This document shows positions 43,379-43,532 of a stretch of DNA of 64,000 nucleotides, piece by piece. The translations under genes were made by a program, and so were the position numbers. A model generated the notes under the pieces. The model saw nothing but the letters and a program-made list of their open reading frames with translations, was not told where the DNA came from and did not search any database. Source of the DNA: Camelus ferus (taxonomy: Eukaryota); assembly GCF_009834535.1 (NCBI RefSeq), contig NC_045711.1:48732001-48796000 (forward strand), in the 5' to 3' direction. Position 1 is the stretch's first letter; each line of letters starts with the position of its first letter.

Positions 43379-43532
43379 TAGATGGGACCCTAGATTTTAA
43401 CAAGCCATAGGTTCTGAGAGTTTCGGGGCGGGGGGCGCATGGTCTGAGTCCTCGAATGACTGCAGGAGACTTCTAGCAAACTCAATTCCATACTGACTGG
43501 GCACATCTTCTACCTGCTGGAGGCTCTGGGTG
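43379..43532 (+). pseudogene. Gasdermin relic, exon 10 homologue
   Basis: Polypyrimidine acceptor ..tctctctgtcaag|; (L)DGTLD vs GSDMA LEGALD; VLE*LQETSSKLNSILTGHIFYLLEALG(g|gtgagg) vs GSDMA GAILYFLGALT(g|gtgagt) and human GSDMD VLECLVLSSGMLVPELAIPVVYLLGALT. Confidence 0.88.

Follow-up and report, generated by a model that had tools for sequence, protein, structure and literature searches.

A gasdermin relic between LRRC3C and GSDMA in Camelus ferus is very probably the pseudogene of a distinct gasdermin-A-like paralogue

We analysed a 64,000-nt stretch of the Camelus ferus genome (NCBI RefSeq assembly GCF_009834535.1, contig NC_045711.1, positions 48,732,001 to 48,796,000 of the forward strand; hereafter the window, numbered from its first letter), which is free of N runs and holds, in order, GSDMB, LRRC3C, a decayed gasdermin at 38353-43532, GSDMA and PSMD3 (Table 1). 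The decayed gasdermin, referred to here as the relic, is the subject of this report. Attention had been drawn to it by a reading of the letters alone (the sequence-only reading), which singled out its exon 10 as unusually long and proposed on this basis that the relic is not a recent copy of GSDMA. We find that the relic lies on the same strand as LRRC3C and an intact canonical GSDMA and between the two, in the slot that genes named 'gasdermin-A-like' (GAL) occupy in other mammals, and that it is very probably the camelid unitary pseudogene of this distinct paralogue.

Exon 10 of the relic is homologous to the exon 10 of GAL genes, so that the exon recognised earlier stands, but its 5' boundary does not: the interval first given, 43379-43532 (154 nt), had used a shifted AG, and alignment with the orthologous exons places the start at 43378, where the ancestral acceptor AG has mutated to AA (43376-77). 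The orthologous exon is 151 nt long in both Elephantulus edwardii (L001 17037-17187) and Monodelphis domestica (L002 24555-24705), leaving the relic with a net gain of 4 nt, and four added bases lie in a G-rich stretch. Both peptide strings that had been noticed in the exon are present, DGTLDFNKP followed by a stop in the frame from 43381 and VLE-stop-LQETSSKLNSILTGHIFYLLEALG in the frame from 43448, and these strings are 67 nt apart in frames that are one base off; the exon therefore holds a frameshift besides its stops. The first of these stops, TAG at 43408-10, falls on a Val codon of the orthologues, while the second, TGA at 43457-59, had been taken for a lost Cys codon and instead occupies the place of a Trp codon (TGG) in Elephantulus, Dugong and Tamandua and of a Lys codon in marsupials. 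A third possible stop, TGA at 43445-47, depends on where the frameshift is placed, giving two or three in total. From a phase-0 start, 50 codon positions can be aligned to GAL exon 10, and blastn comparison of the exon and its flanks with the orthologous exons yields E values of 2e-23 for Elephantulus and 6e-24 for Dugong, which is far beyond chance. The phases themselves (start in phase 0, one extra base at the end) are the same in the relic, GSDMA and GSDMB exons. An exon-10-like match at 44604-44678 (E 0.16) was rejected as a chance hit in a block that is colinear with intergenic DNA 3' of the Dugong gene.

We aligned each relic exon to its orthologous exons and read it in the orthologue frame, with an X at every stop or frameshift, and found every surviving exon to be interrupted. 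Exon 2, the first coding exon, reads ACA where the start codon should be and has lost 27 nt in frame and a further 19 nt that shift the frame. Exon 3, for which a flanked four-way alignment was used after pairwise MAFFT without flanks misplaced the largest of its deletions, has lost 39, 5 and 1 nt, and its donor GT has become GG. Exon 4 has lost 11 nt at its 5' end, gained an insertion of 4 nt and lost one further nucleotide, and exon 5 is mostly gone. Exon 9, in which 30 of 59 residues remain identical by a codon walk, carries two TAG stops (42847-49 and 42880-82), several indels and a donor changed from GT to GC. Exons 11 and 12 are missing altogether, and with them the end of the autoinhibitory domain: at 43656-43668, where both sides are colinear with other mammals, jaguar holds 1785 nt (L006) and a vespertilionid bat 1409 nt (L009), each with exon 11-12 remnants, and the Dugong exons 11-12 map into the same gap. 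In all, the start codon and splice sites are lost and there are at least five in-frame stops and at least eight frameshifting indels. There is no open reading frame (ORF) for a two-domain gasdermin, and the locus is a pseudogene.

Table 1. Coordinates of the relic, its neighbours and GAL relics in other mammals (positions in the window unless another sequence is named)
Feature	Sequence	Position	Strand	Basis and remarks
GSDMB	window	~5.7-14.9 kb	-	tblastn
GSDMB exon equivalent to exon 10	window	6729..6867	-	139 nt; tblastn, splice sites read
LRRC3C coding exon (upstream synteny anchor)	window	34822..35592	+	ORF; 97% identical to Vicugna pacos LRRC3C, ~90% or less to others
Relic exon 2 (first coding exon)	window	38353..38523	+	33/55 residues identical to Elephantulus; four-way and ten-way DNA alignments
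Relic exon 3	window	40588..40727	+	alignment with Elephantulus, Dugong and Monodelphis exon 3
Relic exon 4	window	41085..41249	+	35/48 residues identical to Elephantulus
Relic exon 5, probable 3' remnant (rest deleted)	window	41724..41752	+	low confidence; alignment to Elephantulus and Dugong exon 5
Relic exon 9 (linker end and start of C-terminal domain)	window	42790..42982	+	tblastn with P0013 and P0159: 65% and 64% identity
Relic exon 10	window	43378..43532	+	155 nt by homology; 26/47 residues identical to Elephantulus GAL
Junction of the 1.4-1.8 kb deletion that took relic exons 11 and 12	window	43656..43668		
Conserved block 3' of the deletion, from the 3' region of the old gene	window	43669..43965	+	blastn: 77-81% identical to jaguar, bat, Dugong and Elephantulus
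GSDMA, intact canonical (downstream synteny anchor)	window	48654..58240	+	tblastn exon map; PDB GSDMA3 match E 1e-38
GSDMA exon 10	window	56424..56538	+	115 nt; sequence read
PSMD3 exon 1	window	near 61.1 kb		
GAL relic	Bos L005	23462-25499		
GAL relic	Panthera onca L006	13831-18707		
GAL relic	Tamandua L007	16321-20396		
GAL relic	Macaca L008	13357-20041		
GAL relic	Eptesicus L009	25767-29599		
GAL relic	Elephas L010	14438-21604		almost complete, with stops and a frameshift

Repeats are scattered over the same region. Copies of a tRNA-derived short interspersed nuclear element (SINE; Rfam tRNA, 31.8 bits) lie at 39708-39770, within the relic intron between exons 2 and 3, and at 50747-50807, 57693-57758 and 51820-51927 (the last on the minus strand), within GSDMA introns. 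(CA)n microsatellites occupy 40951-40974 in the relic, 46722-46777 between the genes and 49440-49519 in GSDMA intron 3.

The identity of the relic emerges from comparison with living genes. A search with the first coding exon of GSDMA against 1.84 billion cluster representatives returned 128 gasdermins. When these were compared with the relic region, the proteins of Elephantulus edwardii (XP_006889541.1) and Monodelphis domestica outscored all others by a wide margin, and both of these are named 'gasdermin-A-like'. Homologues then sought with the Elephantulus protein include those of Dugong and Trichechus (both LOW QUALITY models), Petaurus, Gracilinanus and Antechinus and more opossum copies, which as full-length models are 54-66% identical to Elephantulus GAL. 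GAL proteins share 38-42% identity with canonical GSDMA and 30-34% with GSDMD and GSDMC, and the living orthologues carry both PF04598 and PF17708. When aligned to Elephantulus GAL (residues 2-301), the X-masked relic reaches 185 bits (E 6e-58), and its scores do not exceed 74 bits with canonical GSDMA or 53 bits with GSDMD; the Elephantulus match, together with those to canonical GSDMA (E values of 1e-14 to 1e-17), establishes homology to the gasdermin N-terminal pore-forming domain. At the protein level the relic is 44-59% identical to most GAL proteins and 37% identical to one opossum paralogue, with 33-36% for GSDMA, 26-31% for GSDMD and 21-24% for GSDMB.

Gene order leads to the same assignment. 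LRRC3C lies directly upstream of GAL in the Elephantulus, Monodelphis and Dugong contigs, a gasdermin of canonical length lies directly downstream in Elephantulus and Dugong, and blastn shows positions 34000-49273 of the window to run colinear with the GAL loci of Dugong and Elephantulus, all the way from LRRC3C into GSDMA. Because both the order LRRC3C-GAL-GSDMA and the DNA colinearity with these afrotherian loci match, the relic is the positional orthologue of GAL. In the opossum at least two full-length GAL loci, about 47 kb apart, lie downstream of LRRC3C (Monodelphis chromosome CM051224.1, 196.83-196.93 Mb; L002 and L004), and GAL survives as open genes in marsupials and apparently also in Elephantulus, a circumstance that the sequence-only reading missed.

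Two features of these living genes deserve separate mention. Exon 3 of XP_006889541.1 is annotated short, the full exon being open in L001 at 13547-13730, and the last 32 residues of the same model correspond to a conserved block that lies about 1.7 kb 5' of the first coding exon of GSDMA (window 46894-46989, L001 24138-24248), so its terminal exon is probably a mis-join. In opossum GAL (P0012/P0132) the linker at about residues 228-240 contains FLSSD-G, and a paralogue has FESD-E. Caspase-1 sites of the FASD type have been reported for bird GSDMA (PMC10948149), and the opossum linker may be said to recall them, as a resemblance between motifs only.

To place the relic among gasdermins, we built a tree of 47 rows (GAL, canonical GSDMA, GSDMB, GSDMC, GSDMD, sauropsid GSDMA and three outgroups, with the relic X-masked and otherwise unrepaired) in IQ-TREE under LG+C20+F+G4, with support given as ultrafast bootstrap / Shimodaira-Hasegawa-like approximate likelihood-ratio test (SH-aLRT). 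This maximum-likelihood (ML) phylogeny, the check that had been proposed for the earlier claim, nests the relic within placental GAL (99/97), inside a GAL clade with support of 100/99, and in neither GSDMA nor GSDMB; with the exon-10 columns removed, the relic still falls in GAL (support 100). Under the approximately unbiased (AU) test, grouping the relic with canonical GSDMA was rejected (p=0.0011, log-likelihood 61 lower), as was grouping it with GSDMD (p=0.0002, log-likelihood 111 lower) or GSDMB (p=0.0045).

These results bear directly on another possible origin, in which the relic would be a fairly young tandem copy of canonical GSDMA, made within artiodactyls or eutherians, that has since decayed and whose added exon length is junk inserted after its death. 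Such a duplicate would be expected to adjoin GSDMA on the same strand, as the relic does, and the TRALARQL string of exon 2 is indeed much like GSDMA. Apart from SINE and microsatellite matches, however, blastn aligns the relic region to the local GSDMA over a single 56-nt stretch of exon 4 (73% identity), so short that comparison with the neighbouring gene at the DNA level is uninformative; the 'extra' codons match intact GAL genes residue for residue; and relics with the same lesions are found in macaque, bat, jaguar and cattle. Together with the AU result, this leaves the duplicate next to no credence, and the earlier claim that the copy is not a recent offshoot of GSDMA is borne out.

The same tests speak against a second origin, from or nearest to GSDMD or GSDMB, as the GSDMD/GSDMB-like architecture that the sequence-only reading saw in exon 10 would suggest. 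Its attraction lies in the 50 codons of the exon, close to the 47-48 of GSDMD, and in a 27-residue tail that aligns without gaps to GSDMD (52% identity to the dolphin protein). That tail is, by contrast, 67% identical to Elephantulus GAL, both placements fail the AU test, and the long exon recurs in sauropsid GSDMA. We therefore see hardly any chance of this derivation, and the supposed affinity is better understood as a retained ancestral length.

This last point follows from a count of the residues between the alignment columns that bound GSDMA exon 10. Canonical placental GSDMA has 38 codons in all 10 species sampled and in the local gene, GAL has 50 (with one further base, hence 151 nt) and the relic 50 positions, compared with 48-50 in most sauropsid GSDMA (bird, turtle and crocodilian), 47-48 in GSDMD, marsupial and platypus sequences included, 42-47 in GSDMC and 38-46 in GSDMB. 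Since it is also seen in sauropsid GSDMA, the long exon is the ancestral state, and the 38-codon exon of canonical placental GSDMA, a length the relic does not share, is derived by loss of 12 codons; being a retained ancestral trait, the long exon is uninformative about any special relationship to GSDMD or GSDMB. The nucleotide lengths first quoted for the GSDMA exon and its GSDMB equivalent were both read again in the window, and the view that the relic lineage split off before the GSDMA exon was shortened is borne out by these counts. The shortening itself lies elsewhere than had been supposed: the local GSDMA was said to lack the VLE..YLLEAL segment but contains its counterpart, VTLEALPKDVLLSKEATGAILYFLGAL (VTLEALPKDV..YFLGAL), and 11 of the 12 missing codons sit upstream of it, in the first half of the exon. 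The orthologous Elephantulus exon 10 and the local GSDMA exon 10 both match PF17708 at positions 58-94 (E 0.003 and 7e-5, respectively).

GAL is an old branch within the mammalian GSDMA-D radiation that very probably predates the marsupial-placental split, and the suggestion that the relic is a fossil of the early radiation thus finds support in the ML tree, where its lineage is one of the deep branches. A later origin would have GAL and canonical GSDMA parting only in the eutherian stem, with marsupial GAL as pro-orthologue of both and canonical GSDMA evolving fast thereafter. This would fit with the long stem of canonical GSDMA (0.56) and with the absence of a plain 'gasdermin-A' from any marsupial among the matches listed, the GSDMA homologue search having given its best 120, all placental. 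Yet the corresponding topology, placental GAL with GSDMA and marsupial GAL outside, was rejected (p=0.0002, log-likelihood 70 lower), and GAL of Afrotheria unites with that of marsupials on a common stem of 0.42 (support 100/99), so we hold a split in the eutherian stem to be improbable. As for the closest relative of GAL, direct sisterhood with sauropsid GSDMA was tried and is disfavoured (p=0.015), while sisterhood with GSDMA (p=0.41) or with GSDMC and GSDMD together (p=0.10) was not rejected; from its tandem position, GSDMA is the simplest candidate.

Several points weigh against assigning the relic to an old and separate GAL lineage. The ML tree pairs GAL with GSDMB at only 44/83, which, with the two unrejected alternatives, means that the position of GAL among GSDMA, GSDMB and GSDMC/D is not settled by the tree, and gene conversion between tandem copies could distort it. 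Canonical GSDMA could not be established in marsupials: the fetched opossum flanks showed exons of the GAL type and none of the canonical GSDMA type. The Elephantulus gene is a prediction whose exon 11 falls in an assembly gap and whose last exon is doubtful. Finally, family assignment runs through the orthologue alignments because the short stop-free pieces of the relic gave no match by themselves, neither in a PDB search with a 24-aa piece of exon 10 nor in Pfam with five pieces, which are too short for a Pfam match.

In the 10 kb downstream of LRRC3C taken from six further species (cattle, jaguar, tamandua, macaque, a vespertilionid bat and Asian elephant) we found decayed, unannotated GAL exons in all six. 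Opossum, Elephantulus, elephant and tamandua have ATG at the start codon; macaque, jaguar and cattle have ATA there, the camelid has ACA, and the bat lacks the codon through a deletion. Macaque, bat, jaguar and camelid share one and the same 27-nt deletion in exon 2, with a larger deletion over it in cattle. Bat, cattle and camelid have a 19/20-nt deletion in common, jaguar, cattle and camelid agree in three exon-4 indels, and the Trp codon of exon 10 has changed from TGG to TGA in bat, jaguar and camelid. The lesions of elephant, Dugong and tamandua differ from these boreoeutherian ones. Because the lesions are shared, we place the inactivation in the boreoeutherian stem, and the simplest reading is a single event there, followed by more decay in Laurasiatheria and accompanied by independent losses in Paenungulata and Xenarthra; the deletion of exons 11-12 came later, on the camelid side. 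The relic is thus a shared boreoeutherian pseudogene and not one peculiar to the camelid, a point that the sequence-only reading missed. Nei-Gojobori ratios of nonsynonymous to synonymous substitution (dN/dS) of 0.19 between Elephantulus and Monodelphis, indicating constraint, and of 0.45 between Elephantulus and the relic, a rough value inflated by misaligned codons near indels, fit this reading.

The relic itself is most likely functionless, judging from its sequence. Some of it might nevertheless have been re-used, for example as a regulatory element or a non-coding transcript of the GSDMA/LRRC3C locus, and the conserved block at the 3' end, which stands out from surroundings at about 67-73% identity in comparisons spanning four orders, could be read in this way. 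Exon 10, on the other hand, is no better conserved (68-76%) than its neutral flanks and gathers stops and indels, and we give re-use a small chance. The same block shows a weak likeness (E 0.09) to the last 26 residues of a 667-aa opossum GAL isoform.

From these findings a history of the locus can be proposed. GAL would have arisen before the marsupial-placental split, within the GSDMA-D radiation and, on the simplest view, in tandem with GSDMA, as a standard two-domain gasdermin whose 151-nt exon 10 would preserve the length that this segment of the autoinhibitory C-terminal domain had ancestrally. In the boreoeutherian stem it would have lost its start codon together with 27 nt from exon 2, with neutral decay to follow, and the camelid copy would then have lost exons 11-12. 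More tentatively, and at somewhat less than even chances in our estimation, GAL may be a separate, undescribed branch of the GSDMA-D radiation that stood beside GSDMA in the therian ancestor, multiplied in marsupials and was lost in the boreoeutherian ancestor and independently in elephants, sirenians and xenarthrans; with the most sauropsid-like C-terminal exon among the mammalian paralogues, it might even be the least altered descendant of a caspase-1-cleaved ancestral GSDMA. The lineage is possibly new to the literature: we did not find it in an incomplete coverage of papers on gasdermins in connection with pseudogenes, marsupials, opossum or LRRC3C, it goes unmentioned in PMC8742441, PMC13076529 and the text of PMC10948149, and the supplements of the last are without Elephantulus, Monodelphis and Dugong.

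If this more tentative reading is right, the boreoeutherian loss would explain why GAL is absent from human and mouse gene lists, and a GAL relic is to be expected in the LRRC3C-GSDMA interval of nearly every placental genome. Gasdermin evolution is an actively debated topic, in which mammalian GSDMA has been found to behave as a paralogue of bird and reptile GSDMA despite their shared locus (Billman et al. 2024, PMC10948149). A second old gasdermin in the interval would mean that the therian ancestor carried two or more gasdermin genes in tandem at this locus, and GAL gives polarity to the change in exon-10 length, with canonical GSDMA as the derived state. The independent losses of GAL form a set that could be related to ecology or pathogens, and its living orthologues are material for probing the lost function. 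The value of the relic is that of a dated fossil, and for the annotation of this window it is a unitary pseudogene.

Among known systems, the relic is most like the GAL genes themselves (XP_006889541.1; Monodelphis XP_007482353.2 / F7GCD9; Petaurus breviceps; and the LOW QUALITY Dugong and Trichechus models), which occupy the same slot, have the 151-nt exon 10 with the same phases, belong to the same clade (100/99) and are 44-59% identical to it over the surviving relic exons. Unlike the relic, which is without a start codon, most of exon 5 and exons 11-12, the Elephantulus, marsupial and sirenian genes are open or nearly open. Canonical GSDMA (48654-58240 in the window; mouse GSDMA3 structures 5B5R / 6CB8) shares with it the family, the exon phases, the same-strand tandem position and a similar N-terminal exon, but differs in its low identity (33-36%), 115-nt exon 10 and separate clade and in being intact and conserved in all placentals sampled. 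Mouse Gsdma2 and Gsdma3, which are tandem copies between Lrrc3c and Gsdma and young rodent duplicates of canonical Gsdma, resemble the relic as additional gasdermins in the same interval; GSDMA3, however, matches exon 2 of the local GSDMA at about 92% identity, whereas the relic lineage very probably predates the marsupial-placental split. Lastly, the GSDMA of birds, reptiles and caecilians (PMC10948149) has in common with the relic the ancestral locus and an exon of 48-50 codons, and differs from it in standing outside the mammalian radiation (AU p=0.015 for GAL with sauropsid GSDMA).
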